Sequence record: OR513085.1
Length of the DNA: 64,000 bases
Direction: 5' to 3' (one strand)
Of the stretch, positions 1-63,910 are shown piece by piece. A program made the position numbers and the translations under genes. Every line of letters begins with the position of its first letter. Position 1 is the stretch's first letter. The notes below the pieces were generated by a model, which searched no databases, was not told the origin of the DNA, and saw only the letters and a list, made by a program, of their open reading frames with translations.

Positions 1-8
1 AGATAATT

Positions 9-8357: not shown

Positions 8358-9164
8358 ATGAAAAACTTTTTCAGCTTTATCAACGAAGCAAATTCATTCA
8401 ATACAGACAACGGAAATCCTTTTAATGCAGGTGACATAGTTTATACAAAATCTGGTCGAATTAAAGGGGTAATTGCATCAGATTACGTAAGCAAATCATC
8501 TAACGGACTTTCAGTTTACGTCGACTACCTAGAACCTGGGTCATACAAAGGCGGCAAGAGTATGAAATTGCATTTAATTTCTGAACTTGTAGCATCTAGC
8601 GAAAAGAACATAGAAGGCAAAGAATTGGTGAAAAACTTCAAGCCTGGTGACTTAATAAAAATTAAAGCAACAGGAAATGTTGGCGAAATTATCGAACATG
8701 ACTTAGGCAAAAACAGAATTCAGTACAAAATTGTACAGGGCGAAAATATTACAAGACTAGATAATTTCGTTTCCGCATTTGGAATTGAACTTGTAGATGC
8801 TAAGAAAATGGCAGATGCTAAATTAGCCGAGCTTAAGGCTAACAAAGACCTTAACAAATTCTTTAAAATTTCAATGAACTGGGAATGCGAATTTACTTTG
8901 GAAAAGGCTGACGACAAAAAGCCAGGTAGGTTCTGGGTTAGAATTCAAACATTCGGAAAACGACTTTCTGAATATGAAGCTTACAAAACTGCAACTAACT
9001 TTGCGCCTCAGTCTAACAAAGAATATTCTGTTTCAGATTCGTATTACTTTGACACTAACGCATCTAAACCAACATCTTGGAAAGAACTTAAAGAAAAGTT
9101 TAGTGAAAGCGAATCAAATTCAGAAGTTTCTGGTAGAATTTACCGTTACTTAGACCTCAAATAA
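8358..9164 (+). CDS. Putative internal head protein with capsid-targeting leader and two KOW/SH3-like barrels
   Basis: MKNFFSFINE|A; FNAGDIVYTK..KGVI and FKPGDLIKIK..GEII repeats. Confidence 0.55.
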   Translation: MKNFFSFINEANSFNTDNGNPFNAGDIVYTKSGRIKGVIASDYVSKSSNGLSVYVDYLEPGSYKGGKSMKLHLISELVASSEKNIEGKELVKNFKPGDLIKIKATGNVGEIIEHDLGKNRIQYKIVQGENITRLDNFVSAFGIELVDAKKMADAKLAELKANKDLNKFFKISMNWECEFTLEKADDKKPGRFWVRIQTFGKRLSEYEAYKTATNFAPQSNKEYSVSDSYYFDTNASKPTSWKELKEKFSESESNSEVSGRIYRYLDLK

Positions 9165-12147: not shown

Positions 12148-12396
12148 ATGAAAACATTTACATACTTTATTAATGAAGCTAAACGAAACGAAAATTTACG
12201 TAATGACATTTATGCTAAATTGACTGCAGGCTCATCTAAAGTACCGCTGACAGTTATACAAAGATTAACTGCAATGATACAAAATAAAAAAGTATCGTTG
12301 ACTGCAATTTTATCATTTGCTGAAAGTTTCATAAAAGACAAAGACTTACTTAATGAAATTGTTAGCATGCTAAATTCAAATTTCGTTAATGAATAA
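12148..12396 (+). CDS. Small prohead core/internal protein (position of T4 gp67/68)
   Basis: MKTFTYFINE|A leader; lies between portal and protease. Confidence 0.55.
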   Translation: MKTFTYFINEAKRNENLRNDIYAKLTAGSSKVPLTVIQRLTAMIQNKKVSLTAILSFAESFIKDKDLLNEIVSMLNSNFVNE

Positions 12397-12439: not shown

Positions 12440-15400
12440 ATGAACAACACACAGAACTTAGGTTTTCTTGTAGAAAATCATGTTTCGCACAACGTCTTCC
12501 AAAGAATTGACGAATCTGTTGCGTTACCAGATGGAGTTCTGATGCTTATGCGAGGTACGTTTATTCCTATGGACGTTCCTGGCGAGAATGGCAGATGGTA
12601 CACTTACGCTGACTATGCACCGCAGGTAGAAATGTTACTACCTAAAATTGCTAGGAAAGAATGTTTTGGAGAAATTGAACATCCTCAAAGAGTTCACGTT
12701 CCTTACGACTTAGCGTCTCACAGAGTTGAGGAAGTTTACTACGACAAAGCATCAAATTCTTGGATTGGTACTATCGCAATTTTAGATACTGACAAAGGTA
12801 GAGCAGTTTACGATATCGCAAAAACTGGAGCTCCTATATACGTTTCGCATAGAGCGTTAGGTTCAGTTGACCAAAAGACTGGCAAAGGAATTCTACTTAA
12901 ATTGCTTACTTGGGACGTAACTTCCAATCCATCGTTTAAGGCTGCAGAATTTAGCAGAGCCGAACTTATCAATGAATCCGCTTACGTTTACTTGCCGCTA
13001 GAAGACGAAATGCTTAACGAATGCTATGCTGAGCTTGGCTTAACGTCAGAAGACTTCATCAACGAATCTACTGTTACTCTAACTCAAAGCGAATTGTTAG
13101 CTATGCTTAATGAAGCGTCTAACAATGCTAACGCTATAGCTACCGAACGTTACGCAAAGCTTTTAGCTAACGCAATTAATGTAAATGCCAATTTTGTTAA
13201 TGAACATATTGCAATTCAGCCATCACAAGTTATCGACGTCGTTAAGAAAATTAAAGAACGTCCTTGGATGACTGCCCAGGAAATGCTTGACCCGGAATTC
13301 AAATTTAACGACGAATATATGCATCCGCTAGATTTAGTTGCTGCAATGCAAGCTCTGGCTTCAGAAGGCATGCTATACGACGAAGATGCTCCTGGTTTTG
13401 ATGAAAACGAACCTCAAATAGCATCAGTTATTGCAGTACCTCAATTAGAAGAAGTAATTGCTAATTGGCAAATGGAGCAAGATGCTTTAGCTGCGGATGT
13501 TATTGCTGCCGAAGAAGCCAAAGCTGCTAAGTTTTCAAATGAATCTGTAGACTTCGTAAATAATTTTGCATCTGAATATGCTTTTGTAGGTCCTTATGAA
13601 GCTACAAAACAAGCAGTAGCTGCATTAACTGGCAAAGCTATTGGTGATCTTTCTGAATCTGTTGAAGCTAGAATTTCCGACATAATGGTTAACGCTAAAC
13701 CTGGTAATGCTGAGGAAATTATAAATGCTTTAGTTGACGCTGAACTATATGTTAGTGAAGCTTTAGAAGCAGCTAGCAATCCTAATAAGAACAAAGAAAT
13801 GCTACAAATTTTAGTTAACTTTACAAAATATGTTGAACTAAAATTACATGTATTCCACCACAATACTAAAAGCTACGCACAACATAAAGCATTCGATACA
13901 GCATACAAAAGCTTCCAAAAGCTAACTGATAGCATAATTGAACAAGCTATGGGATATAGCGGCGAACGCTATGATACTATAGACCTTTCAGTTTCTATGC
14001 CAATTGTATATGCTGACGATTCTGGAGCTGATGTTATAGAATCACTTTATTCGTTGTCAAAAGTTATTAAGCTAATTTCTGAGGATTTGATTGCCGGAGG
14101 ACTTTCTACGTTATCTGACGATGTTTCAGGAATTGGTGCGCAACTTTCGTACTTAATGACATTAAACGAATCTCAGCTAGATGAATTTGCTAATGAAGGT
14201 GTTTCTAGCTGGCTTAAAGATAAGTGGTCTAGGCTTAAACGTTGGGCCAACTCAAACATAGATGCTACTGTAACTATTGATGGAGTAGACTATATTATTG
14301 ATGACATTCAGGAAGACGACAAAGTAATTTGCAGAGATTCCGATGGCAAAGCCAAAGAATTTACCTTTGACGAGGTTTATAAATACTTAAACGAAAACAA
14401 CATATTACAACCACAAACAATGGCAAATACACACATTAACGAGGGCGTTGACGGAGCAAAAGCAAACGTTCTAGCTATTCTTTCCGGAGCAAAATTTGTA
14501 AGCTCGGTAGATAATGCAACAGATTATGACTATTCAATTGACGACGACGGACTTACTGCAGCTTCTGATGAAGTGGCATTAGATATCCTAGCCGTTCTTA
14601 AAAATAACGCAGTTACTGCTTCTGTAGATGGAGCTAAAGTAGCTATAACTTTCGGAATTGTTCCTGCAGTAGTTACTGACCAAATTAACGAATCTTTAGA
14701 AGACTTCTGTAACAAAATGCTTAGCTATGCTAACGAATCAGGTAATGCAGGAAACATTATTAACGCAGCAATGGCTATTCAAAATGCTAATGGCGTTATA
14801 AACATTAACGAATCTTACGTTACGTATTGCGAACAAATTGTAGAATATGCTAACGAATCAGGAGTAGCTTCTGACATTGCTAACGCTGGATCGCTATTAC
14901 AAAATGCTTTAGAAGCAAAATTTGCTAATGAGGCCGAAGAAACTGCAGCAATCGTATCTGATGCTACAATTGCCGGAGATGTTGCTGTAGATGGAGGTAA
15001 TGAAAGATATGCAGTAGGATGCGTATTCTCAGTAGATTCTCAAAACTTCACAGTTGCTGAATTTGACGGAACTAACGTAGTAACTACTACTGGTGAAACT
15101 TTCACTGTAGCTGAACTAAAGAAAGACGATGACGCACCAATTCCTGGAACTGATGATGCATTAGAACCTGGTGCTCCTGTAGAAGGCGACAATACTGTTG
15201 ATATGACTGTAACTCCTGTAGGAACTATCGGTTCAATCAACGAATCTTATAGCAAAACTAACAAGCCAAAAATTGGTGATAAAGTTACTTTCATCATGGA
15301 TAACCCAGACGGTCCTGGATTTGGTAAAGTTAAAAATGGTGAAAAAGTTACTGCTACTGTAGCTGATTTTGGTGACTGGGAAGGTGACGGTTATTCTCTT

Positions 15401-16063
15401 GACGTAGTACTTACTGGAGTTTCTGAGGAATACAACGTTTACACTACTGAACTTATCAATGAAGCTGCTGAGGACTTAACTGACTTACCTTCTGGAACTG
15501 CAGAGAACATTGACCATAAAGTTATCGAGGATGGCAATGCTACTGACATTCCTAGCAACCTCGACAAACCACTAGAAAACAAATTAGCTGAGGACTTCCT
15601 TGCTAGAGCTGATAAAGGCGTAACATTTGAACAATGGATTGTTGACCAAGCTTCTGCTAACGAATTAGTTACTCCTCAGTTAGTAATGACGGTTAAAACA
15701 ATTATTTCTGACATGGAAGTTAAGCAAATGATTAACGAATCTGCAGTACTAACCGCAGCATTTATTAACGAATCTGCAGAAGCTACTGAACAATCAGCTC
15801 ACTTAAAGCTTATTGGTGACCACATCGGACAATCTCACAAATACATGTTTGAACACTTGAACGAATCTGCAAAAGGAGTTCTAGTTGCTCAAGCTGAATT
15901 GTATAACTTGTCCAGCCAAAATATCCACGACTTCCTTGATACAAGAAACTGGGCACAAATCGCTAATACTACAATTAACGAATCAGTAGCTCAAATTTCT
16001 GCAAATATTCAACAAAATGACTGGAAATCTGCACTTAAAGCATCTTTCAGAGCAGGTAGATAG
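12440..16063 (+). CDS. gp21: Prohead protease (gp21 family) fused to a roughly 1030-aa acidic scaffold/cargo polyprotein
   Basis: GENGRWY, CFGEIEHP (His), VSHRALGS (Ser), WDVTSNPSF in the first 175 aa; about 20 xNE|S/A/G sites downstream. Confidence 0.88.
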   Translation: MNNTQNLGFLVENHVSHNVFQRIDESVALPDGVLMLMRGTFIPMDVPGENGRWYTYADYAPQVEMLLPKIARKECFGEIEHPQRVHVPYDLASHRVEEVYYDKASNSWIGTIAILDTDKGRAVYDIAKTGAPIYVSHRALGSVDQKTGKGILLKLLTWDVTSNPSFKAAEFSRAELINESAYVYLPLEDEMLNECYAELGLTSEDFINESTVTLTQSELLAMLNEASNNANAIATERYAKLLANAINVNANFVNEHIAIQPSQVIDVVKKIKERPWMTAQEMLDPEFKFNDEYMHPLDLVAAMQALASEGMLYDEDAPGFDENEPQIASVIAVPQLEEVIANWQMEQDALAADVIAAEEAKAAKFSNESVDFVNNFASEYAFVGPYEATKQAVAALTGKAIGDLSESVEARISDIMVNAKPGNAEEIINALVDAELYVSEALEAASNPNKNKEMLQILVNFTKYVELKLHVFHHNTKSYAQHKAFDTAYKSFQKLTDSIIEQAMGYSGERYDTIDLSVSMPIVYADDSGADVIESLYSLSKVIKLISEDLIAGGLSTLSDDVSGIGAQLSYLMTLNESQLDEFANEGVSSWLKDKWSRLKRWANSNIDATVTIDGVDYIIDDIQEDDKVICRDSDGKAKEFTFDEVYKYLNENNILQPQTMANTHINEGVDGAKANVLAILSGAKFVSSVDNATDYDYSIDDDGLTAASDEVALDILAVLKNNAVTASVDGAKVAITFGIVPAVVTDQINESLEDFCNKMLSYANESGNAGNIINAAMAIQNANGVININESYVTYCEQIVEYANESGVASDIANAGSLLQNALEAKFANEAEETAAIVSDATIAGDVAVDGGNERYAVGCVFSVDSQNFTVAEFDGTNVVTTTGETFTVAELKKDDDAPIPGTDDALEPGAPVEGDNTVDMTVTPVGTIGSINESYSKTNKPKIGDKVTFIMDNPDGPGFGKVKNGEKVTATVADFGDWEGDGYSLDVVLTGVSEEYNVYTTELINEAAEDLTDLPSGTAENIDHKVIEDGNATDIPSNLDKPLENKLAEDFLARADKGVTFEQWIVDQASANELVTPQLVMTVKTIISDMEVKQMINESAVLTAAFINESAEATEQSAHLKLIGDHIGQSHKYMFEHLNESAKGVLVAQAELYNLSSQNIHDFLDTRNWAQIANTTINESVAQISANIQQNDWKSALKASFRAGR

Positions 16064-16278: not shown

Positions 16279-18000
16279 ATGCAAACATTATTTCCAAACG
16301 CCAACCAAGTTGGCAACATGGTAGACAGATGGTCTGAATTTATTAACGAAGCAGCTCCTAAAGGTGGTAGTACTCTATCTGATGGTAAGAGAGCAATGAT
16401 CGCTCAGGTTGCAGAATTCCACGCTCATGGCAAGGATATCGCAACTGGAGGATTCTTGAACGAATCTATCATCGGTACAAATATTATGTCAAACGGTGCT
16501 AACATGAACGGAATGGGTTCTATTACTCTTCCTACTAACGTTAAAGCTGGATTTACCCAATTCAACCAACAAACTCCTGGTTCTGGTGATGTTCCTGTGA
16601 CTGTGCTTTCAATGGCAATGTCAGTAGCTGCGACTACTATCGGTTTTGATTTGTTACCAACTATTCCAATTTATCAGCCTGCAGTAATGCTACAGTACGT
16701 AGATTACCTTTACGGTGGTGGTAAACTTGATTCGGCAGATAACCCTCCTTTGATCGTTATGGCTAGAATTGAGGAACTTAGAGGACACCTTGATCTTAGA
16801 CAAGGTTCTAAAGTTGCTATCCACTCTGTTGCAGGTGATGCTACTTCTGGATGGACATTTGAGTTCGTTGGATTTACAAGATTAGAAGGATATGCAACTT
16901 TAAAGGTTGACACTTTCGCTAACAAAGTAACTCCTGCATTAGGTTCTCTTGCTTTAGTTGAATTTACTATTGACGGTGGTGCTCCTGTAACAGTTGCTCC
17001 TGCTGGAAATCCTAAATTGGAATTAGCTAGAGCGGTTGAAAACCACTTCTCAATGTTCACAGCTTACGGAAACCTTGATGGTGAAGGAGTTGATAGAGCT
17101 GAAGCTGAAAAAGGTACAAGATCAGTTATCGAAATGAGAACTTACTCTAAAGTAGTAAGAACTAAAGAACATGCTGTAGAAGGTATCGTTTCAAGACAAC
17201 AAGCTAGAGATATCAAAGCTATGGGTCTTGATGCATTCCCTCAATTGAAAGTTGCAATGCAGAATGACATCTCTCAGTCATTAAACAAGGAAATCCTTAT
17301 GAGAATGAGACAGATGGGTGTTTCTACACACTTAATGTTACAGAAATCTCAAGGAGTTAACTTGAACACTTACATTGACTTACCAGCTAACACTTCTAAG
17401 CCAATTGTACAGTTCAAAACTCAGCCTCTTATCGACAAGAACGGAGTTAACCAAACTGCTAACTTCTTACCAGCTCCTAACTCTGAAACTAACTCAGCTG
17501 CTGAAAACCTTTGGACTAGACAAAGAAGAGTAACTTCTACCATCATCACTGGTGCTGCTCTAGTAGGACAAGCTTCTTTCCACGGTTCTGCTGACGCTGT
17601 AGTTGTTAACTCTCAGTTAATGGCAGCTATTAAGGAATCTGTTGGTTACCAGCCAGCTACTATTGAGAACAAAATCTCTCAGTCTACAAAGGCTCTTTAT
17701 TATGCAGGTACTATTTCTGACGTTGCAGTTTACTGTGACCCTAACATGAAATGGAACGATACTACTGCTATCTTGGCTAGAACAGGTAAAACTGATGACG
17801 GTCTTGATATTAACCAATTAGCAGAAGGGTTAGTTTTTCTTCCGTATGTCTTGAGTTCGGAAGTTGAAATTATCACTGAAGGAACTATGGGTCCTAAAGC
17901 GTTAATCGAAACTGTTTATGCTATCGGAGAAATTGGTATCAGACCAGAACTTGCTTACTTAACTATCGTATTCGATAACGGATTTGGTAGATGGGCATAA
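16279..18000 (+). CDS. gp23: Major capsid protein (T4 gp23 family)
   Basis: PGSGD..VLSMAMSVAATTIGFDLLPTIP, VVVNSQL, YAGTI, EGLVFLPY, EGTMGPK; follows the protease; FLNE|S at residue 62. Confidence 0.92.
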   Translation: MQTLFPNANQVGNMVDRWSEFINEAAPKGGSTLSDGKRAMIAQVAEFHAHGKDIATGGFLNESIIGTNIMSNGANMNGMGSITLPTNVKAGFTQFNQQTPGSGDVPVTVLSMAMSVAATTIGFDLLPTIPIYQPAVMLQYVDYLYGGGKLDSADNPPLIVMARIEELRGHLDLRQGSKVAIHSVAGDATSGWTFEFVGFTRLEGYATLKVDTFANKVTPALGSLALVEFTIDGGAPVTVAPAGNPKLELARAVENHFSMFTAYGNLDGEGVDRAEAEKGTRSVIEMRTYSKVVRTKEHAVEGIVSRQQARDIKAMGLDAFPQLKVAMQNDISQSLNKEILMRMRQMGVSTHLMLQKSQGVNLNTYIDLPANTSKPIVQFKTQPLIDKNGVNQTANFLPAPNSETNSAAENLWTRQRRVTSTIITGAALVGQASFHGSADAVVVNSQLMAAIKESVGYQPATIENKISQSTKALYYAGTISDVAVYCDPNMKWNDTTAILARTGKTDDGLDINQLAEGLVFLPYVLSSEVEIITEGTMGPKALIETVYAIGEIGIRPELAYLTIVFDNGFGRWA

Positions 18001-19804: not shown

Positions 19805-20245
19805 ATGGCTATGAACAAACAAAACATACAGCGTGCAATAAACCATATTAGAACATTACGGCCTGAAAATTTTGATATGCAAGATTACCGTGCAGCCCAA
19901 TTTACTGACAAAGCTCCTGAATGCAAAACTATAGGATGCATAGTAGGCCATTGCACTATACTTGATGCCAAAAACATCAATGAAAAATTTATAGATATGC
20001 GTAACGATTCCATTATGTTCAACGAATGGTCAGTCGAATTCTTTGGCATTGGTATTTTGCAAAGAAGCTGGGACTATATGTTTTCATGTAATTGGGCTAA
20101 GTCACAAAAAACTAACACTATAGAACATGCAATTTATCGCATGGAACGTATAATTGACGATTATAAGCCAGGCAATATTGACGATGAATATTCATACGAA
20201 ACTGGCGCTACTAGGCTTGAACCTGGATATACTGACAACGACTAA
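19805..20245 (+). CDS. Hypothetical protein (Cys/His motif CKTIGCIVGHC)
   Basis: 146-aa ORF, tightly packed. Confidence 0.65.
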   Translation: MAMNKQNIQRAINHIRTLRPENFDMQDYRAAQFTDKAPECKTIGCIVGHCTILDAKNINEKFIDMRNDSIMFNEWSVEFFGIGILQRSWDYMFSCNWAKSQKTNTIEHAIYRMERIIDDYKPGNIDDEYSYETGATRLEPGYTDND

Positions 20246-20301
20246 CTTTTATGCACTACAGTGCAATCTATAAACATAATAACAAATAAATTTTTAAAAC
20301 A

Positions 20302-21219
20302 ATGACAAACATCAACGCGACCGAAAGACTCATTGCTATCTGGCAAAATGATTATGCTAGGCACACTAAAAACCACAAAACAGTCAACGAAGACGGCATT
20401 CTTAAAAAGTATTGGAAAAATCCAATTACACATTATTATGCTAATATTGGCACTGATGTACTTAGACAAATGCTAGAAGATTCAGAAGCTTATGACTATC
20501 CTGGCTTAGAATTTGCAGAACCTCAGCAAAATCCTAACAAAACTGCAATGCCTGAATACATAGGCAGTTATGCACTTTCAGAGGACCAGGTCATTCAATT
20601 TTATCATGACAAAGACCTCAAAAATGACATGCAGATGTACTATGCAGAAGAGGAATATGATTATCATCGACTACTTTTCGGAAGTCGTAGCAATCCTACA
20701 TTAGGCAAAGTATTCTCAAAAGTTTATTGTAACATCATTACAGATACGCCAATTTCAGACTTCCTTAGACTTCATATTTACCGAGTACTAAACAACCTGG
20801 ATAATGAAGGCACTAAATTCTACTTGCTACTTTCTGCAGCTGCAGCAAAACAACTAAAGCATGAGTCAGACTTTACTGAACAAATTTCAATGACTACAAT
20901 TAGCCAAATTAAACACAACACATCAAAATTTGGCACGTTCCGACCAAAATGGAAAAAGACTTCTAATTATGGCAGAGCATTCAGGAACATTTTAGAAAAT
21001 CATGCATGCATAGAATTGTACGAATGCCATGATTCAGGAGCTTCTATTAACCAGGAGCATAATTATCCTATGGCTGCTATACTTACTAGCTACAAAATGC
21101 ATGAACGTTTCGATAATTGTAGCATACATTCACCAATGCATCCTAACGATCATACGCCAACATCATTAAAGTCAGAACTAATTGAAAATATTTTGGACAA
21201 AGCTTTAAAAACTTGCTAA
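20302..21219 (+). CDS. Hypothetical protein
   Basis: 305-aa ORF. Confidence 0.7.
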   Translation: MTNINATERLIAIWQNDYARHTKNHKTVNEDGILKKYWKNPITHYYANIGTDVLRQMLEDSEAYDYPGLEFAEPQQNPNKTAMPEYIGSYALSEDQVIQFYHDKDLKNDMQMYYAEEEYDYHRLLFGSRSNPTLGKVFSKVYCNIITDTPISDFLRLHIYRVLNNLDNEGTKFYLLLSAAAAKQLKHESDFTEQISMTTISQIKHNTSKFGTFRPKWKKTSNYGRAFRNILENHACIELYECHDSGASINQEHNYPMAAILTSYKMHERFDNCSIHSPMHPNDHTPTSLKSELIENILDKALKTC

Positions 21220-33230: not shown

Positions 33231-36200
33231 ATGGCAAAATTTACAAAACTTGCTGGAGAAGTTGCTAAGCTTTACGACGGTAAAGTTACTGGCAGCATTA
33301 TCAAATTTGACAGTGAGGACGACTTATTTAAAGCAGCTGATGAAATTGCAGATCAGTTCGCATTTACAATGGACCAGGATAAACTGACCATCGAGTTCCT
33401 TAACGAAAACATTGACATAAAATTCCTTAAGCAATTTGCTTCTGCAATGGGAGTTTCTCAATTCACTAACGAATCAGTTGACAAACTTACGAAGCAAATA
33501 GGAATTAGCCTTAACGAGGCTGAAGTTGATACCGTTACTACGTTACTAAACAAAGTAGAAAGTCCTGAATATCCTGACGTTGCTAAAGTTGCGGCTGACC
33601 CTATGCAACAAATTGCTGATACTATTACAAACTCTGCAGCTACAGGTGCTACGTTAGATATTGTAGACGGTGAAAATTCTGCTAAACAAATTGTTATCAG
33701 AACTGATGATAAACTTATTGCAGCTACACCAACTGACATCGTAGCAATCAACGAATCAGCTTACGTACACTATGGAATGCATCAGCTTAACGAAAATGAA
33801 TACAATGCACTTAAAGCTTTGGAAGATGTTAATGCTAGACGTAGATTCCTTACAAGCATGGGTATCATGGACTTAGATGCCGATTCAATTTCAAAGAACT
33901 TGGAGTTGCTTAAACCTCTTCATCCTGACATGGATGCTAATGGGTTGCTTCCGCTAAATGAAGCTAACGTAACAATTATTAACGTAAGCAATGCTTTTGC
34001 TAACGAAGCCAGTAACGCTCTAGCTAATGTAGCTAATCTTTATGCTAAGTTTGTTAATGAAAACAATTCATGGACAGTTAAGTCTTACGATGCTGCTGAT
34101 GTTAAAGCTACTTTAGTTTCTGCAGGAATTCCTGCAAACGAAATTTTTATGAATGAGTCTAAAGACATGGACATCTACAACTTACAATCTAAAGTTGCAT
34201 TATTCTGTAAAAAGTCAGGACTTTCAGGAGCCGATGTACAAAAAGCTTTACTACTTGTTAACCTAGAAGCTAAAGAAGCTAAACCTAATTTTAGCAAATA
34301 CGTAAACATAAAGGACTCAATGCTAAACGAATCTGCCGATGCACAGGATGCTGAGGAAATGTTTGAACGTAAAAACAAAGCATATGCTAAAATGATTAGC
34401 AAAGACGGCCTAGCTGCTGAGCTTACTGAATTCCTAGCTTCTTTTGGAGAAAATGCTAAAGTTCCTGAGGATGGTTTAGTTGGTGAGTATGGTGAACTTT
34501 CTGCAGACTTGCAAGAAGGAATCAACAAATTCATGGAAGAGCGTGGTTACTTTGCTAATGAAAGTACTAATTGGACGCTTGATAAAAAATCAAAAGGTGA
34601 ATATAACGAATGGCATATTACTGGCGATGCACTAAACAAAGTAAAATCACGTGATGAAATTTTTGATGTATTACCTGAACTTAAAGGAATCTATAAAACA
34701 CTAATTGATTCTAAAAATGGACTAAAGTACAGCGACCGTGTTAAAGTTGGCAGCATTACAGTTACTGGTGATGATATGGGCGATATTTTAAATTTTCTTA
34801 AAGGTAACGGTTCACTAAATGAATCTGTTGATGCTAACGAGGAAATTGAAAGTGTATACAAATTTGAATCTATAAAAGACATTGAGGTTGCTGCTGCAGC
34901 TAAAGGTTATGTTTGCAAAGGACATTCAGGACAATCCGAATCTTCTGACAAGTATAAATTTGATATTCTAGCTAAAGGTGGCAAAAAATGTGCAATGGGT
35001 ATTTATGACAAAACTAAAAAAATTGCAATACTGGATGTTAACGATGAACATAAAGGTACCGCTTTACTAGAAGCTAAAATGATTAATGAAAGTTTCACTA
35101 ATGAATCTGCAGGCATTGAAAACTTATTCGCATCTATGGGAGCTACATTCAACAAAGAGTTACGTACAGATGGCACTTACAAATACCAAGTTACTGGCTT
35201 AGTAGGTTATGCTAACGAGGCTACTGAAGTACCAAACACTGCCGACCTCATCGCATTTGAAATTCTTAAATTGTACGGAAACTTCAAAGAAGCTACAAGG
35301 CTATCACGTTCAGTAGTTAAACAAGCGTTACGTAATGTTATTGATACATTGAAAGTTGATGACTCTTGGTTAACTGACGAATCTAAATTTATTTCGCTTT
35401 TTGAAGCTATTGATACTATGAGAGTAGACTTTGGCCCAATTGACGAATCTTCAAATTTGCCAACTAAAACAAGCGAATTAAAAATTAACGCATATGTAGC
35501 ATTTAAAAATAATGGTGCAAGAATATTTGGTAAAATTTCAGGCATAAAAGGTGACGAAGTTTCAGTAAAACTAACAAACGGCAAACAAATGCTAGTTGAT
35601 GCTAAAGATGTAATTTTAGGTCTTGAAAATTACGTTAATGAATCAATACCTCAGCAAGAAGCTAAGATTGCCGGAACTAAAGCTAAGATTGCTGAAATTA
35701 AATCAGAGGCTAAGGCTGCTTCGGCTAACGCATCTTCCAAAATTTCCACTGAAAAGGCTAAGTTAGTAAATGCCAGAGCTACTTTGAAAAACCTTAAAAA
35801 GTCAAAGTCGTTAAATGAGTCTAAAGCGCCTCAAGGAGTTGGAGGAAATGTTTATGTAGTACCAAACTCGTCTTTCCAAAATCCTTGGCTAACACATAAG
35901 CTTGAAACTTCACTAGGTATGCGAGGATATCAATTTGCTAACCAATTCAAGTCTGACATCGTAAACGCCGACATTATGGTTGACTATTATGTTGCAAAAG
36001 ACGACAAAGTTAGTGAAGTTTGTATGGACATGGAAGGTACTTCAAAACCTCAAAAGACTGAAATTATAGCTACACCAGTTTCAATTTACATTAACGAAAA
36101 CAATGTACTTTGTTTCAATGAAAATCCAATTCCTACAGAAATTGCAGAAAACGGGCAGATTGGTTCAGTAGCACAATTCAAGGAATATGCTAAATACATT

Positions 36201-36365
36201 CTGAGTGGTGGCATTCCTGGTGCAGATTCTGCATGCGAAGAGGGCCCAGTTACTCAGGAAGATATTGCAAAAATTGACAGTATTTGTGATGCTTGCGGTG
36301 AAAACTATGGTGCTATGATGGGTAAATTTGATGATTATCTTAGCCAGAAAGCTACTGTTAACTAA
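33231..36365 (+). CDS. 1044-aa late protein with about 18 xNE|S/A/N sites; probable internal head polyprotein
   Basis: Late promoter; motif density matches the protease scaffold. Confidence 0.7.
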   Translation: MAKFTKLAGEVAKLYDGKVTGSIIKFDSEDDLFKAADEIADQFAFTMDQDKLTIEFLNENIDIKFLKQFASAMGVSQFTNESVDKLTKQIGISLNEAEVDTVTTLLNKVESPEYPDVAKVAADPMQQIADTITNSAATGATLDIVDGENSAKQIVIRTDDKLIAATPTDIVAINESAYVHYGMHQLNENEYNALKALEDVNARRRFLTSMGIMDLDADSISKNLELLKPLHPDMDANGLLPLNEANVTIINVSNAFANEASNALANVANLYAKFVNENNSWTVKSYDAADVKATLVSAGIPANEIFMNESKDMDIYNLQSKVALFCKKSGLSGADVQKALLLVNLEAKEAKPNFSKYVNIKDSMLNESADAQDAEEMFERKNKAYAKMISKDGLAAELTEFLASFGENAKVPEDGLVGEYGELSADLQEGINKFMEERGYFANESTNWTLDKKSKGEYNEWHITGDALNKVKSRDEIFDVLPELKGIYKTLIDSKNGLKYSDRVKVGSITVTGDDMGDILNFLKGNGSLNESVDANEEIESVYKFESIKDIEVAAAAKGYVCKGHSGQSESSDKYKFDILAKGGKKCAMGIYDKTKKIAILDVNDEHKGTALLEAKMINESFTNESAGIENLFASMGATFNKELRTDGTYKYQVTGLVGYANEATEVPNTADLIAFEILKLYGNFKEATRLSRSVVKQALRNVIDTLKVDDSWLTDESKFISLFEAIDTMRVDFGPIDESSNLPTKTSELKINAYVAFKNNGARIFGKISGIKGDEVSVKLTNGKQMLVDAKDVILGLENYVNESIPQQEAKIAGTKAKIAEIKSEAKAASANASSKISTEKAKLVNARATLKNLKKSKSLNESKAPQGVGGNVYVVPNSSFQNPWLTHKLETSLGMRGYQFANQFKSDIVNADIMVDYYVAKDDKVSEVCMDMEGTSKPQKTEIIATPVSIYINENNVLCFNENPIPTEIAENGQIGSVAQFKEYAKYILSGGIPGADSACEEGPVTQEDIAKIDSICDACGENYGAMMGKFDDYLSQKATVN

Positions 36366-36575
36366 CATAACGTTCTGCTAACATAACGTAACAATTACAA
36401 AAGCCTGAACTAACATAACGTTCAGGCTTTTAAAACGTTCTACAATATTTTGCAAAAGCATTACTTACGTTAAACTATCGTTACGTTAAGCTTACGTTAC
36501 GTTAAACAACAAATTACGTTCGACTACATTTTGCAAAAGCTTACGTTACGTTCTACAACATTTAGCAAAATAATA
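36366..36575. repeat. ACGT-rich intergenic repeat element related to 10056-10240, containing a terminator (36399-36431)
   Basis: TAACATAACGT x3; shared CTACATTTTGCAAAAGC and CAACAAATTACGTT. Confidence 0.75.
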
Positions 36576-36598
36576 CATACTAAAACATAACAAATACA

Positions 36599-37900
36599 AT
36601 GTCAAATTACATAAATGAAGCAATGTCACTTAATGGCAAAGTGGCATATAACGAAGGCCAAGTAGCTTTCAAGACTAACACTGCATTCTCCATCATACAA
36701 CATTTAGCTTGGCAATACAACGACACTTACGTTGGTAGCGTTAAGACAGTTAAGCTACCTTACGAAATAAAAGCCAAAGCAGTTAAGCAACTTTCGTTAA
36801 ATGGAACGCCTTGCATTTTCAGAGAACTTGGCGAGCTTGAAACATTCAAATCTGTAGGTGAATTTGACTTCCTACAAATGGTTTATATGTTCACTGATAA
36901 ACCTGAATTACTACAATACATCGATCAATCTTACGTAGAATTTGGTGTTTTCTTACAAAATGGAAATTGGTGGTTTGTCGAAAAGCAAAACAATGCTAAG
37001 CTTTTTGAAGAGATTGACGAACTTAACGTAGGCTATTACAACCTAGACTTACCAACTGCTAAGCTACCAAAAACAATTTCAATGATTGATTCTGTTAGCC
37101 AAGGCAAAACCGCATTACGTACGTACGCAAAGGATAACGCTCTAACTGATTTTGTTATGTCAACGTTTACTACTCCAATGGCAGTGCAACTTAATGCGTA
37201 TCCTTCAATAGCTAAATTTGCATCGTTTGTACCAGATGCTAACGAATTTACTAATCAACTAATTGCGGTAGTTTTAAAAGAAGAAACTGAAGTTCCTTTC
37301 TTGCTAGACAAAACTTCTGAGCATATGATATTGTTAGTTTGTGTAGAGGGCGTAAACAAATGGTTCAAAATTTCGGCATCCGACGTTCTTGCAGCAATTA
37401 GTAAAAACCAGCAAAACTTTTTTGTAGATAGCGTTAAGAACTCACTAGAATCTAGTAGACTTAATGCAGGACTAAAATCAGAGGACTTATATGCTGCAAT
37501 TAAACGTTTACGTGCAGTAGCATTATTCAACAATTTGCTACAAGATACAGGCTTCTCAGGCTACTATTACGTTAAGAACAACTCACATACAATAAAGGCT
37601 GATGCATTTAACAAATTCAGTGTTAATTCTCAAGGCTATGTTAATCAGATTTTTAACGACAAGGATTTAGTACTTTACAAAGACACTATAATTTCATATA
37701 GCGCCGATCTTAAAGCTGGCATAGTAGTTATTGCATATCCTGGATTAAACCATACTTGCTACATAACTTCAATTGACCAACTACCAGAATTGCAAAATGA
37801 ATTCCTGGATGGCAATGCTAAATTGGACACCGTAGTTTCAATTTCCGACATTTACTTCAAGGACAACGGTTCCAAGAAGGGCGACAGTGGTAAAAAATAA
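36599..37900 (+). CDS. Late protein with MSNYINE|A leader
   Basis: 433-aa ORF; late box AATACATA 36572-79. Confidence 0.65.
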   Translation: MSNYINEAMSLNGKVAYNEGQVAFKTNTAFSIIQHLAWQYNDTYVGSVKTVKLPYEIKAKAVKQLSLNGTPCIFRELGELETFKSVGEFDFLQMVYMFTDKPELLQYIDQSYVEFGVFLQNGNWWFVEKQNNAKLFEEIDELNVGYYNLDLPTAKLPKTISMIDSVSQGKTALRTYAKDNALTDFVMSTFTTPMAVQLNAYPSIAKFASFVPDANEFTNQLIAVVLKEETEVPFLLDKTSEHMILLVCVEGVNKWFKISASDVLAAISKNQQNFFVDSVKNSLESSRLNAGLKSEDLYAAIKRLRAVALFNNLLQDTGFSGYYYVKNNSHTIKADAFNKFSVNSQGYVNQIFNDKDLVLYKDTIISYSADLKAGIVVIAYPGLNHTCYITSIDQLPELQNEFLDGNAKLDTVVSISDIYFKDNGSKKGDSGKK

Positions 37901-37963
37901 ACATAAATTTAATATGCCGAATATGCTTAGACTTAGCACAAATCATTCGGTTTTCTCAAATCC

Positions 37964-37986
37964 AAGCAGGCTTCGGCCTGCTTTTT
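37964..37986 (+). terminator. Intrinsic terminator
   Basis: AAGCAGGC-ttcg-GCCTGCTTTTT. Confidence 0.8.
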
Positions 37987-37998
37987 AAAGCTAAAATC

Positions 37999-38217
37999 AT
38001 GACACATGTACATATCACGGATTCCTGGATAATCCAAAACGTTAACAATCCAGAATTAGTATTAGAACGTTTTGAATTGCCTGAAGTAGCTTATGCAGTT
38101 ACTAAACTTACGCAAAGCATTGATGACGTTATTGCTAACAAAACGCTAAGCCAAGCAGAACGTATACATACAATATCCAACATAATCAAACAATACCACA
38201 GAGAACTGTACTCATAA
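37999..38217 (+). CDS. Hypothetical protein
   Basis: 72-aa ORF. Confidence 0.55.
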   Translation: MTHVHITDSWIIQNVNNPELVLERFELPEVAYAVTKLTQSIDDVIANKTLSQAERIHTISNIIKQYHRELYS

Positions 38218-38220
38218 ACT

Positions 38221-39066
38221 ATGCTAAAAACATTTACAAATATGACGTCCGCGGATAACAACGCATTTATAAATGAATGTGTTATCGCAGCTAAGAAATT
38301 CGATGGCCACTTTATTATTGCAAAAAATCGTGACCGTCCGTATGACCCATCATTAACGCTAATCCACGAAATTATTGATGGCATTGAAACTGTGTGGATG
38401 GTTGACGAAGACACTGACTGGTCCGAAGGCATGAATGAATTTGGCATTAGCATAGTTAACTCGGCACTTATGGTTGCTAGAGACGAGGCTGAAAAGAAAA
38501 CTGCCAAAAAAGAAGGCAAAAAGTTTTTGAAAGACGGTACTATTATTCGTGAGGCTTTAAAACATTCTGATGTCGAAAAGATCATCGACATTATAATAAG
38601 CAAAGACGGCGGGCTTAAAGGTCATACTTTTGTTTGTACTAAGGATGAACTTTATGCAGTCGAATTAACGTCCAAGCATAATCCTGAAGTTCAAAATATT
38701 TCTGACTCAGACAATGAAGTTCGTACAAATCACGGAATTAAGCATACTTCTGCAGGCTACCAAAAAGGTTTATCATTCAAGTCATCTGCAATTCGTAAAA
38801 ATTCTGCAATTGCTCAGATTAGCAAAGCTAACACACCTGAGGAGGTTCTACAAAGAATGCGTAAACGTCTTTATAAAAAGGACTCTATGCTTAACATGAA
38901 GCGTGATACTAAAAAGCTTTGGACATCTTCGCAACTTATGATGGACCCAACTAACTTAACTATTAAGCTAGTAGCGTTTTCTGACAAAACTCAGGATTTG
39001 AAAATAGACAACAGATTGCCAGAAGGTTATGTTCCTAAAATAAAACTTGAATTGCAAGTCATTTAA
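38221..39066 (+). CDS. Ntn-hydrolase (C45/C59-like Cys nucleophile) with 19-aa propeptide ending FINE
   Basis: C20-VIAA..IIAKNRDR; WSEGMNEFGISIVNSAL; VRTNH; late box TATACATA 38163-70. Confidence 0.75.
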   Translation: MLKTFTNMTSADNNAFINECVIAAKKFDGHFIIAKNRDRPYDPSLTLIHEIIDGIETVWMVDEDTDWSEGMNEFGISIVNSALMVARDEAEKKTAKKEGKKFLKDGTIIREALKHSDVEKIIDIIISKDGGLKGHTFVCTKDELYAVELTSKHNPEVQNISDSDNEVRTNHGIKHTSAGYQKGLSFKSSAIRKNSAIAQISKANTPEEVLQRMRKRLYKKDSMLNMKRDTKKLWTSSQLMMDPTNLTIKLVAFSDKTQDLKIDNRLPEGYVPKIKLELQVI

Positions 39067-39106
39067 TTTCCTAAATATTTGTATTTTAAATAAACAACTA
39101 AACAAT

Positions 39107-39811
39107 ATGAACTTTAACAAAAACGAAGCCTACGGAATTGGAGGCGAGAATCTAACGTACAAAGGCAGCACGTCAACAGCCAATAAAATATATCATGCAT
39201 TCGTTAACGAATCTGGAGGTAATATTTTCTTAACTGCTGAGCAGATTAACGAAGCTACTAACGGTTCAGCCGACGAAGAAGTTTATAATCAATGGGCTGA
39301 GCTATTACTTCAGCATATCGGAGTAGACAGAGCTAAAAAATACTTGAATGCTAACGATATTAACAAAGAACTTAAGGCTATGCTTGATGCTAACCATGAC
39401 ATGGAGTCTGACATTCTTTACGATAAAGCAATGAATGCTAAACTTATTGCTGCAGTTAGCAGACGTAGAAAGGCTGCAGGATATGTAAACGAATCTACAG
39501 AAAGCTTTGATTCCAAAGATACTGTAGCATTCATCAGCAAAACGTTTCCTGGAATTTCAACAAAATTCTTACCTGCTAACTTCATGACTAAAATGAAGTA
39601 CGAAAACAGTAATGTTATTGCTGACAAAGAAATGGGAATTTTCTCAGCAGTTTTAGCAGACTGTGCATCTAAACTTACTGTTAGAACTTTCGGAGTTAAT
39701 GAAGTAGAGGTATTCTTTGACTTAAACTACGAACTTAAAAATCGTAGAAGCAATGGAATGTCAGTTTCTTATACATCATCCGACGGTGGTAAGAACTTCA
39801 AAATTCAATAA
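39107..39811 (+). CDS. Probable internal head protein (FVNES, QINEA, YVNES)
   Basis: ATG 39107; three motif sites. Confidence 0.6.
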   Translation: MNFNKNEAYGIGGENLTYKGSTSTANKIYHAFVNESGGNIFLTAEQINEATNGSADEEVYNQWAELLLQHIGVDRAKKYLNANDINKELKAMLDANHDMESDILYDKAMNAKLIAAVSRRRKAAGYVNESTESFDSKDTVAFISKTFPGISTKFLPANFMTKMKYENSNVIADKEMGIFSAVLADCASKLTVRTFGVNEVEVFFDLNYELKNRRSNGMSVSYTSSDGGKNFKIQ

Positions 39812-39833
39812 GCATACTTTATTTAAAAATAGC

Positions 39834-39865
39834 AATGCCTAGCACTCGAAAGTGCTAGGCATTTT
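39834..39865 (+). terminator. Intrinsic terminator; late box AATAAATA at 39885-92
   Basis: AATGCCTAGCACT / AGTGCTAGGCATTTT. Confidence 0.8.
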
Positions 39866-39916
39866 CGGCTTTATATGACTGCATAATAAATATACAAACT
39901 AAACAAATTTTTTATA

Positions 39917-40315
39917 ATGGCATTTGACTTTAAAGATATTTTGTACGACAGAGTCAGATTTGAAACGCCAGGAATTCCAGGTAATGTAGTTATTGAGGAC
40001 GGTTTGGTACGTCAAACACAAATGCCTGATGGTGACATCGACAATCTTTTTAAGTACATTTACATTTATGCAGGCGATGGTACGCCACGAAAACTTTTAG
40101 CAACATCAATTGCTAGTGTTTACTATACAGATGGCAAACTATCATCAAACAGAATTATTGACACTAACGGATTTACTTTTGCAATATCCGGGCTAACTAA
40201 ACAAACAACCAATCTAAGCAACTATACTGTCATGCTACAAGATGCTAACTCAAACACGCATGTAGCAGATGCTGATAATTTCATTAACAACGTCTATACC
40301 GAAACTGATTGGTAA
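39917..40315 (+). CDS. Hypothetical structural protein
   Basis: Late promoter; upstream of fibre genes. Confidence 0.6.
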   Translation: MAFDFKDILYDRVRFETPGIPGNVVIEDGLVRQTQMPDGDIDNLFKYIYIYAGDGTPRKLLATSIASVYYTDGKLSSNRIIDTNGFTFAISGLTKQTTNLSNYTVMLQDANSNTHVADADNFINNVYTETDW

Positions 40316-40371
40316 ACTTTAACTTGATCGAAAAGACTACATAAAAATCTACAACAACAAAACAAACACTA

Positions 40372-41295
40372 ATGGCAAACAAGGCTGTAGGGATGTTATG
40401 GAAGACCGCACTACCGGCTGTAGCGGACTTACTCCCTAATTCAATTTATTTTATCAAACCGGCTACTGGCGTAAAACCAGGAGTATTCGTAACAAACAAT
40501 GATGCTACGCAGGTTATGCAAATTAACCCGGACACTATTGTAGGAGACTTTGTTGCCAAAATTAACAACATAGCGCCTACAAATGGCAATGTTGATTTGG
40601 ACATAAGCTTTAACAACACTACCGGAGTACTTACGTTTACTGGCGGGGCTAATCAAATTAACCTTGACGCTAGGTACGTTAAGAAAGCTGATTTTGCGCC
40701 ATGGCAAGCTACTACAGATAACAGACTAACTGCATTAGAAGCATTAGCTGCTACAGGTCTAAAAACACCAGTAGCATTCGACGCATCGGCTAATGCAACA
40801 TTCCCTACACAAGCACAAGGTTTTACTTACAAAGTAACTGTAGCAGGTACGACTTCAGGAGTGCTACTTGAAGTTGGTGATACTATTATTTACGACAAAC
40901 CAGGAACATCTAATACACCTTACGTAGTTCAGGCTAATATTGATGCAGCAACTACAACTGTAAAAGGTATCATCAGAATTGCTACGCAAACTGAAGTTAA
41001 CAACAAAGTAGTAGGTTCGTTAGTTGGTGATGCTTCTGTAACTCCACTTACACTTTACTACAAACTTAATGCTTGGCTAGCAGATATTACTGCATCTCAA
41101 ACTGATGTAAATACAGGTACTCGTAATGACGTTTTCGTTACTCCGGCAACTTTAAAAGTTAGGCTTGACACTATTGTAGCTAGTTTGCATACTCACACCA
41201 ACAAAACACAGTTGGATAAAATTGCAGAAGACCCAGGAGGTAATATGACTTACGGAGGTAAGCCAGTTTATACTCTGCAAATTTCAGAGTGGTAA
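40372..41295 (+). CDS. Tail fibre-associated protein
   Basis: gp34/gp12-like repeats ATTTVKGIIRIATQTEV..VTPLTL and ASQTDVNTGTRNDVFVTPATL. Confidence 0.65.
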   Translation: MANKAVGMLWKTALPAVADLLPNSIYFIKPATGVKPGVFVTNNDATQVMQINPDTIVGDFVAKINNIAPTNGNVDLDISFNNTTGVLTFTGGANQINLDARYVKKADFAPWQATTDNRLTALEALAATGLKTPVAFDASANATFPTQAQGFTYKVTVAGTTSGVLLEVGDTIIYDKPGTSNTPYVVQANIDAATTTVKGIIRIATQTEVNNKVVGSLVGDASVTPLTLYYKLNAWLADITASQTDVNTGTRNDVFVTPATLKVRLDTIVASLHTHTNKTQLDKIAEDPGGNMTYGGKPVYTLQISEW

Positions 41296-41342
41296 GCTAA
41301 AGCTAACTTTGCAATAGACTAATTTTACGACAACAAAACATA

Positions 41343-41371
41343 GCCTGGCACTTATAAAGTGCCAGGCATTT
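41343..41371 (+). terminator. Intrinsic terminator; late box TATACATA at 41383-90
   Basis: GCCTGGCACTT / AAGTGCCAGGC-ATTT. Confidence 0.7.
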
Positions 41372-41417
41372 GTCGTTGGCTATATACATACTTAAAATAT
41401 AACATAACTTTCCGACG

Positions 41418-61861: not shown

Positions 61862-62161
61862 ATGAAAACATTTTTCACATTCGTTAATGAATCCGTAACA
61901 AACTATCCTAAGGTATCATCTACTGCAGATTTAGTTGCGGCTTTACCTGGATTAGTTGCAGAAAAATCAAAAGTTCAAGAAGGCAAACTATATAACACAC
62001 TATTAGCAAAAAACGATGGTAGCGTAGTCATAGAATTGCAAACTTCTAATGCTGCAATAAAGGATGCTACTACAGAAGTTCTTGAATTTTACAAAAAAGT
62101 AAAATCATTTAAGACTTATGAGTACGATAGTAACATGGGCATATTTTCTGTAAAATTCTAA
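61862..62161 (+). CDS. Small protein with capsid-targeting-like leader MKTFFTFVNE|S
   Basis: 99-aa ORF. Confidence 0.6.
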   Translation: MKTFFTFVNESVTNYPKVSSTADLVAALPGLVAEKSKVQEGKLYNTLLAKNDGSVVIELQTSNAAIKDATTEVLEFYKKVKSFKTYEYDSNMGIFSVKF

Positions 62162-63310: not shown

Positions 63311-63910
63311 ATGAAAAACTTCTTTCAGTTTATAAATGAATCCATAAAATCGGATAATGTAGACTATTCAAAAAATGTAAAGCTTACTAATGCGGCGTTA
63401 CAAGATAAAAATGTACTTAAATTCGTTGCTAACGTAATATCTTTGTACAAACTTGATTGTAGCGTAGAGGAATTTATTAAGCAATCAGTATTCAGTATTT
63501 CAGATGCTAAACGACAATTCAAAGTAAAAGCTAAATCAAAAGCCGGCAAAGCTATTGAAGTTACTATGATTGATTCTACGCAATACGAATACACTTCTGC
63601 TAGTCCAAGCGTGCCATTTGGAGAATACGACACTGCTAAGCATACTAAAGGCAAACTAGTAAATGTTACTTCATCAAATTATGCTAATGAAGTTAATGAT
63701 GGCGACACTGTACTTTGCGGAACTACTATAGCACCACAAAGCCAAGTTACTTTAGCTACTAGACTTGAACCAGATTTACGTACAGTAGTTGACAAATATG
63801 CCGATAGTAAAGAAAAATCTGTACGTATAACTAAAAACAAATATCGTAATGAACCAGGCCGAGATGATGAGGTTATGGACATTAGCATTATTACTGCAGT
63901 AGTAAAATAA
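63311..63910 (+). CDS. Putative internal head protein with leader MKNFFQFINE|S
   Basis: ATG 63311; leader nearly identical to that of 8358. Confidence 0.6.
   Translation: MKNFFQFINESIKSDNVDYSKNVKLTNAALQDKNVLKFVANVISLYKLDCSVEEFIKQSVFSISDAKRQFKVKAKSKAGKAIEVTMIDSTQYEYTSASPSVPFGEYDTAKHTKGKLVNVTSSNYANEVNDGDTVLCGTTIAPQSQVTLATRLEPDLRTVVDKYADSKEKSVRITKNKYRNEPGRDDEVMDISIITAVVK

Follow-up and report, generated by a model that had tools for sequence, protein, structure and literature searches.

How does an N-terminal nucleophile (Ntn) hydrolase become active when its catalytic cysteine is the twentieth residue of the polypeptide, behind a leader that ends in what looks like the cleavage motif of a viral protease? 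The question is raised by MA9V2_239, a gene with the GenBank label 'hypothetical protein' in Chryseobacterium phage MA9V-2 (OR513085.1), a jumbo T4-like phage of 218.5 kb. It lies in the final 64 kb of that record, the 64,000-nucleotide stretch analysed here and hereafter called the window (window position = record position - 154539). Ntn hydrolases are the textbook case of enzymes that activate themselves, and they require a free alpha-amino group on the nucleophile, so that any N-terminal extension blocks catalysis. For MA9V2_239 we favour, as the somewhat likelier course, activation in trans by the phage's own head protease, probably as a packaged and ejected protein. The elements concerned are as follows (all window positions; an arrow marks the predicted cleavage point):

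38221..39066, + strand: open reading frame (ORF) of the Cys-Ntn hydrolase precursor MA9V2_239, 281 aa.
38221..38277, + strand: 19-residue leader MLKTFTNMTSADNNAFINE, predicted propeptide and capsid-targeting-type sequence, unstructured and of low confidence in the structure model and like other leaders of MA9V-2.
38266..38280, + strand: F16-I17-N18-E19↓C20, predicted head-protease site abutting the nucleophile; the same tetrapeptide occurs in the capsid protein (EFINE↓A) and in an 82-aa core-type protein, p82 (YFINE↓A).
38320..38337, + strand: motif A34-K-N-R-D-R39 on strand beta2, with K35, R37 and D38 invariant; candidate Arg/Asp pair of the Ntn active site.
38722..38736, + strand: motif R168-T-N-H-G172, with N170 and H171 invariant; candidate oxyanion-hole Asn.

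The ORF described in an earlier note on this DNA, with its leader, the C20VIAA start of the mature domain and the AKNRDR motif, matches the sequence exactly, the translation being MLKTFTNMTSADNNAFINE↓CVIAAK...AKNRDR...EGMNEFGISIVNSAL, with E19 encoded by GAA (38275-38277) and C20 by TGT (38278-38280). GenBank places the start at M8 (window 38242), 7 codons downstream of M1. This is probably too late and M1 the better start call, because homologues with 58-70 % identity (MKTF..., MKHL..., MKKL...) begin at the M1 position and the copy in phage MA9V-1, which is 89 % identical over the 6-kb stretch around the gene (window 36000-42000), aligns from residue 1. As the interval from M8 to C20 contains no start codon, the leader has at least 12 residues whichever annotation is used, and FINE↓C is inside the protein either way.

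That the protein behind this leader is a Cys-Ntn hydrolase, as the earlier note had proposed, was borne out by its modelled fold, which is of the C45/choloylglycine hydrolase/NAAA kind, its invariant Cys opening the core. An AlphaFold2 model built on a 41-sequence alignment (mean predicted local distance difference test score 86.7; predicted template modelling score 0.86) shows residues 1-19 as disordered or of low confidence, and places the first core strand, beta1, at residues 22-27, immediately past C20. Foldseek comparison with the PDB returned 26 matches at E ≤ 1e-3, nearly all of them Ntn-fold and consistent with an alpha-beta-beta-alpha four-layer arrangement. The top match was isopenicillin-N acyltransferase (IAT; 2x1c/2x1d, E ~1e-8, template modelling score ~0.6), with further matches to CV2077 (3gvz), bile salt hydrolases, Caenorhabditis elegans NAAA and penicillin V acylase (PVA), and then to archaeal PurO, HslV and proteasome subunits. 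Sequence identity to solved structures lies between 11 and 14 %, and MA9V2_239 itself gave no match in PHROGs, in NCBIfam or, searched both as a single sequence and as a profile, among PDB sequences. The Pfam AAT profile (PF03417, C45) nevertheless aligns with residues 33-251 (E = 1.6e-4; profile positions 9-219 of 225), and several homologues have precomputed PF03417 assignments. Moreover, two homologues match NCBIfam C45_proenzyme (NF040521) at E ~1e-11, the Cys of both falling at profile position ~90; the NF040521 scores of the homologues are 34-45 bits against a cutoff of 85. On the model, MA9V2_239 is an Ntn-hydrolase fold closest to the cysteine branch (C45, choloylglycine hydrolase, NAAA), and by profile comparison it is related to C45 yet outside that family by curated cut-offs.

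The likeness extends to the arrangement of conserved residues. The C45, C59 and C89 enzymes of Cys-Ntn clan PB(C) (best structures 2x1c/2x1d, 3gvz, 3hbc, 6dy3 and 5j9r) share with MA9V2_239 the alpha-beta-beta-alpha fold, a Cys where the first core strand begins, a basic-x-Arg-Asp motif after it and a later Asn. Residues C20, K35, R37, D38, Y41, D62, E69, G70, N72, D88, G134, N170, H171 and G179 are invariant across 259 domains that span the three junction classes described below; by analogy, K35-x-R37-D38 and N170 would be the counterparts of the C59/C45 Arg/Asp pair and oxyanion Asn. There are also differences: MA9V2_239 is ~60-90 residues shorter than the C45/C59/C89 enzymes and has a leader of 19 residues, where IAT has an alpha-subunit of ~100 residues that is removed at Gly-Cys; the residue at position -1 is Glu, instead of the Gly of IAT and PVA; and its activation is proposed to occur in trans.

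The Glu at -1 belongs to a tetrapeptide that recurs across the predicted head proteins of MA9V-2. The phage shares with T4 an S77-type prohead protease, a Gp23-family capsid protein and a T4-type portal, encoded in a head module at window 10-18 kb. The genes of this module, together with other genes that carry the motif, are:

10369-12078: T4-type portal (Portal_T4), head module.
12148..12396, + strand: p82, the 82-aa core-type protein, with leader MKTFTYFINE↓A and C-terminal end ...NFVNE.
12440..16063, + strand: prohead protease of 1207 aa, with an S77 domain at residues ~37-148 fused to a scaffold-like region; 21 x-[ILVMFA]-N-E sites, including MLNE↓C; DUF5856.
16279..18000, + strand: major capsid protein, Gp23 family, with EFINE↓A at residues 19-23 and GFLNE↓S at 59-63, in the N-terminal propeptide region.
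33231..36365, + strand: MA9V2_236, 1044 aa, scaffold- or internal-body-like, with 19 x-N-E sites; first gene of the hydrolase cluster.
36599..37900, + strand: MA9V2_237, 433 aa, upstream neighbour of the hydrolase gene, from which it is separated by the 72-aa MA9V2_238; leader MSNYINE↓A.
39107..39811, + strand: MA9V2_240, 234 aa, downstream neighbour, with four x-N-E sites, among them AFVNE↓S at residues 31-35.
8358..9164, + strand: 268-aa protein, leader MKNFFSFINE↓A.
61862..62161, + strand: 99-aa protein, leader MKTFFTFVNE↓S.
63311..63910, + strand: 199-aa protein, leader MKNFFQFINE↓S.

The two scaffold-like proteins contain the motif [ILVMFA]NE at a density of 17-18 per 1000 aa, versus 1.8 per 1000 in 232 other ORFs, and in these two the residue that follows x-N-E is Ser, Ala or Gly at 29 of 40 sites and Cys at one (MLNE↓C). 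Additionally, [FY][ILV]NE is 6.3-fold enriched within the first 30 residues of MA9V-2 proteins (Fisher P = 1.8e-4). Near-identical leaders are found in six small proteins (MKNFFINE↓S, MKQFFVNE↓S, MKTFTYFINE↓A, MKTFFTFVNE↓S, MKNFFQFINE↓S and MKNFFSFINE↓A), which on this evidence form a candidate set of packaged internal head proteins. Leaders resembling a capsid-targeting sequence (CTS) are thereby present in at least six small proteins, or in nine proteins if MA9V2_237, the capsid protein and MA9V2_239 are added. The leader of MA9V2_239 (MLKTFT...) matches the others in its MK.F(T/F) start and in its FINE end, and its gene stands within a run of x-N-E-bearing genes (236, 237, 239 and 240). The claim that C20 lies directly after the head-protease motif was thus well founded, FINE recurring in scaffold-like proteins, capsid protein and small leaders alike. 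As for the protease itself, the 1207-aa protein shows 28.6 % identity to a 199-aa S77 protease encoded on a related contig, L035 (99.7 bits), which backs the S77 assignment.

A number of further observations concern these proteins. A second M-N-E is found within MA9V2_239 (G70-M-N-E73↓F74, window 38431-38442), in the invariant core segment EGMNEFG; it would be a protease site if accessible, and folding presumably shields it. The T4 prohead protease has ~200 aa, and in MA9V-2 its equivalent is the N-terminal domain of the 1207-aa polypeptide with its 21 predicted self-cleavage sites; protease and scaffold appear to be fused in one polypeptide. MA9V2_236 has no family match, an x-N-E density like that of scaffold, a distance of 17 kb from the head module and its own upstream TATACATA box, and may be a second core or internal-body protein. 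Outside the window, record positions 20104-20622 and 83518-83811 encode two of the six proteins with MK[NTQ]FF.{0,2}F?[IV]NE↓[SA] leaders, the first being annotated as polymer-forming cytoskeletal (bactofilin-like). The 56-60 kb region of the record was also considered as the head module and rejected, as the genes there are tail-like or of no assigned function and the true head genes are those at window 10-18 kb.

We then asked how the junction behaves in relatives of the enzyme. Searches recovered 144 clusters when relatives were grouped at 90 % identity and 471 representatives at 50 %, and no fewer than 578 loci on viral contigs encode relatives; among 50,697 phage genome records only MA9V-1 and MA9V-2 carry the domain. 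The nucleophile Cys is present in all 260 alignable sequences and C20 is invariant in 259 of the 259 domains used for a tree. Three junction classes were distinguished:

Class E, 156 representatives: Glu at -1 in 156/156 and Ile, Leu or Val at -3 in 152/156; ~280 aa, leaders of 4-25 residues, 35-70 % identity.
Class small, 79 representatives: [KR]-x-[AGS]↓C, with Lys or Arg at -3 in all and Ala, Ser or Gly at -1; median length 712 aa, up to 2792 aa.
Met-Cys class, 23 representatives (22 in the 259-domain tree set): leaderless.

The check on NE-C conservation that the earlier note had called for therefore had a divided outcome: [ILV]xE-C is kept in relatives with S77 proteases, Glu being universal in class E, whilst E19 is not conserved family-wide, other members having [KR]-x-[AGS]↓C or Met-Cys. 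In most relatives the leader has 0-25 residues, as compared with 19 in MA9V2_239. None of the leaderless loci examined (L011-L013, L018-L027, L063, L065, L069, L071, L073 and L079) has an upstream in-frame start. A tree of the mature domain implies five or more origins of the leaderless state, whereas the E and small classes require only 2-3 changes. As leaderless forms have arisen so repeatedly, the leader is dispensable for the enzyme itself, and the Met-Cys relatives show, at the level of predicted proteins, that the family is able to start at Cys.

Class-small proteins have a rather different architecture. Their Ntn domain is situated at the N-terminus behind a 5-residue leader, or internally, and in the long proteins, which reach ~2800 aa and are encoded on contigs of 0.1-0.5 Mb, it is fused to PolyA_pol, topoisomerase I, 2H phosphoesterase, HAD_SAK_1, DUF5661, SOD, GNAT or RNA ligase domains. 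This is the architecture of polyvalent proteins, for which packaging and injection have been predicted in phages and conjugative elements (Iyer et al., 2017; PMC5512222); the peptidases catalogued in them are zincin-like, assemblin-like, DD and LonC, with no Ntn hydrolase (PMC5512222). MA9V2_239, in contrast, is a stand-alone single domain. We also considered the Ntn domain as a mere self-cleaving processing module of polyvalent proteins and rejected this as its main role, because most fusions hold the domain at the extreme N-terminus, where self-cleavage would release nothing, and because the catalytic set is invariant in stand-alone forms too.

If a head protease cuts the junction, the junction would be expected to follow the protease of each phage, and the genomic surroundings of relatives bear on this. 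In class E, 18 related loci have the gene immediately before those for terminase and portal (junctions IILGE↓C and ILTE↓C); seven of these, the ones long enough, include the S77 protease (99.7 bits), and up to six of the seven long loci encode scaffold and a Gp23 capsid protein starting MANFNVKSLLE↓A. At a further locus, L089, whose enzyme is 62 % identical to MA9V2_239 and has TFLNE↓C, neighbouring genes specify leaders MKIFKANRFANE↓S and MRIFKSSVRLNE↓S as well as a 620-aa protein with 11 x-N-E sites. Asn at -2 is specific to the clade whose phages are predicted to use x-N-E.

Class-small loci were studied on metagenomic huge-phage contigs of 130-356 kb (L090-L094). Three of these, from high-GC huge phages (L091, L093 and L094), have a conserved gene order of DUF5661 protein, Ntn fusion, TopoI protein, two small or medium proteins, head maturation protease and acidic scaffold-like protein. 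The head maturation protease, ~6 kb downstream of the Ntn fusion, matches phrog_18299 and has relatives in Bacillus phage G, Tunturiibacter phage Tunturi_5 and cluster C mycobacteriophages; it gave no Pfam match and no BLAST similarity to the S77 enzyme. Here it is [KR]xA[SAGC] that is enriched in the first 30 residues of proteins (2.3-fold; P = 2e-4), [ILV]xE being depleted at N-termini, and the density of [KR]xA[SAGC] in the scaffold-like proteins is 24-26 per 1000 against a background of 5.4. Examples are MAFLRTA↓S in the protease, EEKRA↓S...ADKRA↓S in the scaffold and SLKTA↓A in a polyvalent protein, and this pattern hints at an undescribed head-protease specificity. Two other lines of search were without yield: the MA9V-2 capsid protein, compared with viral contigs in order to intersect the hits with hydrolase loci, found no relatives there, and the 10-kb contexts of P0079 and P0113 contain no head genes.

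The closest precedent is T4 itself, in which the CTS motif is L/I-X-E, ten residues suffice for targeting, and residues 8 and 10 (-3 and -1) govern processing; Alt, an enzyme that travels in the head and is ejected from it, is shortened by only 7 residues (PMC9026906). The internal proteins IPI-III and Alt resemble MA9V2_239 in having a short N-terminal leader that ends in [IL]-x-E, the T4 leaders (7-20 residues) being cut by the S77 protease gp21. To our knowledge there is no Ntn hydrolase among T4 head proteins. The MA9V-2 motif (x-N-E) is narrower than that of T4, and, whereas the cut in T4 only releases cargo, at the MA9V2_239 junction it would create the catalytic N-terminus; for this reason we propose cleavage as the activation step.

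The sequence of events that we envisage is as follows. Late in infection a C45-like Cys-Ntn amidohydrolase would be made as an inactive precursor. The S77 prohead protease would cut E19↓C20, making Cys residue 1; we propose this cut because the leader ends in F-I-N-E, the predicted cleavage motif of this very protease, and we hold it to be fairly likely. By analogy with the T4 internal proteins and Alt, the precursor would enter the prohead core, be activated during maturation, stay in the head and be ejected with the DNA. Transport into the core is proposed because the start of the leader resembles the MK.FF.F[IV]NE leaders, themselves like T4 capsid-targeting sequences; that the leader targets the precursor and that the mature enzyme is ejected are matters on which we see the chances as evenly balanced. 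The substrate would be an amide bond, speculatively one in N-acyl lipids of the Bacteroidota envelope, in amides linked to peptidoglycan or in a host protein or peptide conjugate. What is new in this proposal is the application of T4-type targeting and processing to a C45-like Ntn hydrolase, with cleavage as the activation step; our literature search found no publication that connects prohead proteases or virions with an Ntn hydrolase or a C45 peptidase. The earlier interpretation is partly supported, being right in its core of an Ntn enzyme with a protease motif before its Cys.

Several points weigh against this proposal. Ntn hydrolases normally self-process, PVA removing its own short propeptide, and PurF of Bacillus subtilis, a class II glutamine amidotransferase, has an 11-residue propeptide that ends in Glu before the catalytic Cys, with processing regarded as autocatalytic and no viral protease at hand. 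The residues conserved at -3 and -1 could be determinants of autoprocessing. Packaging is not general for the family, because 31 class-E leaders are merely M-[IL]-x-E (e.g. MINE↓C), below the T4-type targeting length of 10 residues, and 22 forms have no leader at all. The suggestion in the earlier note that the leader is both propeptide and packaging signal is supported for MA9V2_239 in so far as its leader resembles other capsid-targeting-type leaders, and does not carry over to these relatives. The family assignments are close to threshold, with a Peptidase_S77 Pfam score for the 1207-aa protein of 27.3 bits against a cutoff of 27, which is marginal, and a Pfam AAT score for MA9V2_239 of 21.9 bits, just short of the gathering score of 23.2. 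The co-variation of junction class with resident protease type is suggestive, being drawn from 4-5 loci with simple statistics and few independent switches, and, as classes E and small for the most part form clades of their own, the agreement with protease type has few independent events behind it. Finally, the MA9V-2 paper offers no proteomics or protease data.

Of the alternatives, the most serious is that the enzyme sheds its own leader by an intramolecular N-to-S acyl shift, the -3 and -1 positions being internal determinants and the likeness to a protease motif coincidental or secondary. Relatives do self-cleave, as reflected in the NCBIfam name 'C45 family autoproteolytic acyltransferase/hydrolase', in IAT and PVA, and in the PDB titles of 2x1c and 2iwm. 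Furthermore, the four-residue leaders of the 31 MINE↓C-type representatives would be senseless as targeting signals, a small -1 residue such as that of the [KR]-x-[AGS]↓C class is typical of self-processing Ntn enzymes, and the two junction classes form mostly separate clades. In disagreement with this, however, residues -4 to -1 of MA9V2_239 are the phage-specific FINE of capsid and core proteins, with Asn at -2 only in the x-N-E clade; the conserved positions are exactly those that T4-type proteases read; the leader starts like the other CTS-like leaders of MA9V-2; and the second junction class matches a motif that is enriched in the scaffolds of its own phages. The leader is also modelled as disordered and outside the active site. 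On balance we regard autoprocessing as unlikely, albeit as a contender to be taken seriously.

It is also conceivable that the head protease times activation and no packaging takes place, the leader being cut in the cytoplasm late in infection and the active hydrolase working in the dying cell, for example on envelope lipids or the wall as a lysis aid, or against a defence factor. T4 gp21 has been found to cleave a soluble host protein at I/LxE in vivo, outside the capsid (preprint PMC12991175), the leaders of 4-5 residues and the leaderless relatives suggest function without packaging, and the late-promoter-like box described below is compatible with late expression. Set against this are the long leader of MA9V2_239 with its MK.F(F/T) start, as in other leaders, the position of the gene among heavily cuttable core-type genes and the presence of the sister class within polyvalent proteins, for which as a type the prediction is packaging followed by injection (PMC5512222). 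We consider this course distinctly improbable. Hardly credible, lastly, is a fortuitous resemblance, with MA9V2_239 as an ordinary cytoplasmic enzyme that has another start or processing and a functionless FINE before its Cys: the AT-rich phage does contain [ILVMFA]NE 106 times in its background proteome, and GenBank does use a different start, but the constancy of Glu at -1 and Ile, Leu or Val at -3 throughout class E, at identities of 35-70 %, cannot be drift, and a leader precedes the Cys under any annotation.

The late box that the earlier note had seen upstream of the gene is plausible:

38163..38170, + strand: TATACATA, T4-late-promoter-like box, 58 nt before the ATG of MA9V2_239.

The same box precedes the protease and capsid genes. 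Its general form, TATA[AC]ATA, occurs 11 times on the + strand of the window (positions 1153, 12410, 14378, 16239, 19448, 22711, 33196, 38163, 41383, 49553 and 60249) and never on the - strand, and it lies 30-40 nt upstream of the genes for the protease, the capsid protein, MA9V2_236 (35 nt) and a 2367-aa protein. The total is not above that of shuffled sequences (11 versus 13.7 expected), and it is only the strand bias and the placement that speak in its favour. With this qualification TATA[AC]ATA is a plausible candidate for a T4-like late promoter in a Bacteroidota phage, standing 30-58 nt before five large late genes.

Two observations on the annotation of the window are added for completeness. 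The gene at 7614-8123, annotated as 'head completion protein', matches the TnsA-like endonuclease N-terminal domain (PF08722, E = 2.4e-15). DNA polymerase is annotated in two pieces ('DNA polymerase II' and 'DNA polymerase family B') at record 149314-155537, the end of which falls in window 1-998, and between the two pieces are two hypothetical genes and a TnpB-family gene.

Taken more broadly, the proposal of activation by the head protease leads to a tentative view, which we hold to be possible though on present evidence rather doubtful, that the whole family consists of maturation-licensed effectors. The junction would have been retuned more than once to the resident head protease, to [ILV]-x-E for S77 enzymes and to [KR]-x-A for those of the phage-G/cluster-C type, and capsid assembly, in place of self-processing, would arm a hydrolase that is delivered to the next cell, either by itself or as the leading module of a giant polyvalent protein. 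The family is large and entirely uncharacterised, and it extends into the polyvalent proteins of huge phages. The MA9V phages are the one tractable system, because they alone carry the domain among the phage genome records surveyed. If the proposal is true, a nucleophile unmasked by a viral assembly protease would be a new control logic for the Ntn class, and the enzyme would add a novel type of cargo to the pathway of T4-type capsid targeting and processing. The junction classes would further offer a route to reading head-protease specificity from sequence, including that of uncultured huge phages, and the leader with FINE↓ could be used in Bacteroidota phages to tag proteins for packaging and release, in the way that the T4 CTS is used in Escherichia coli.

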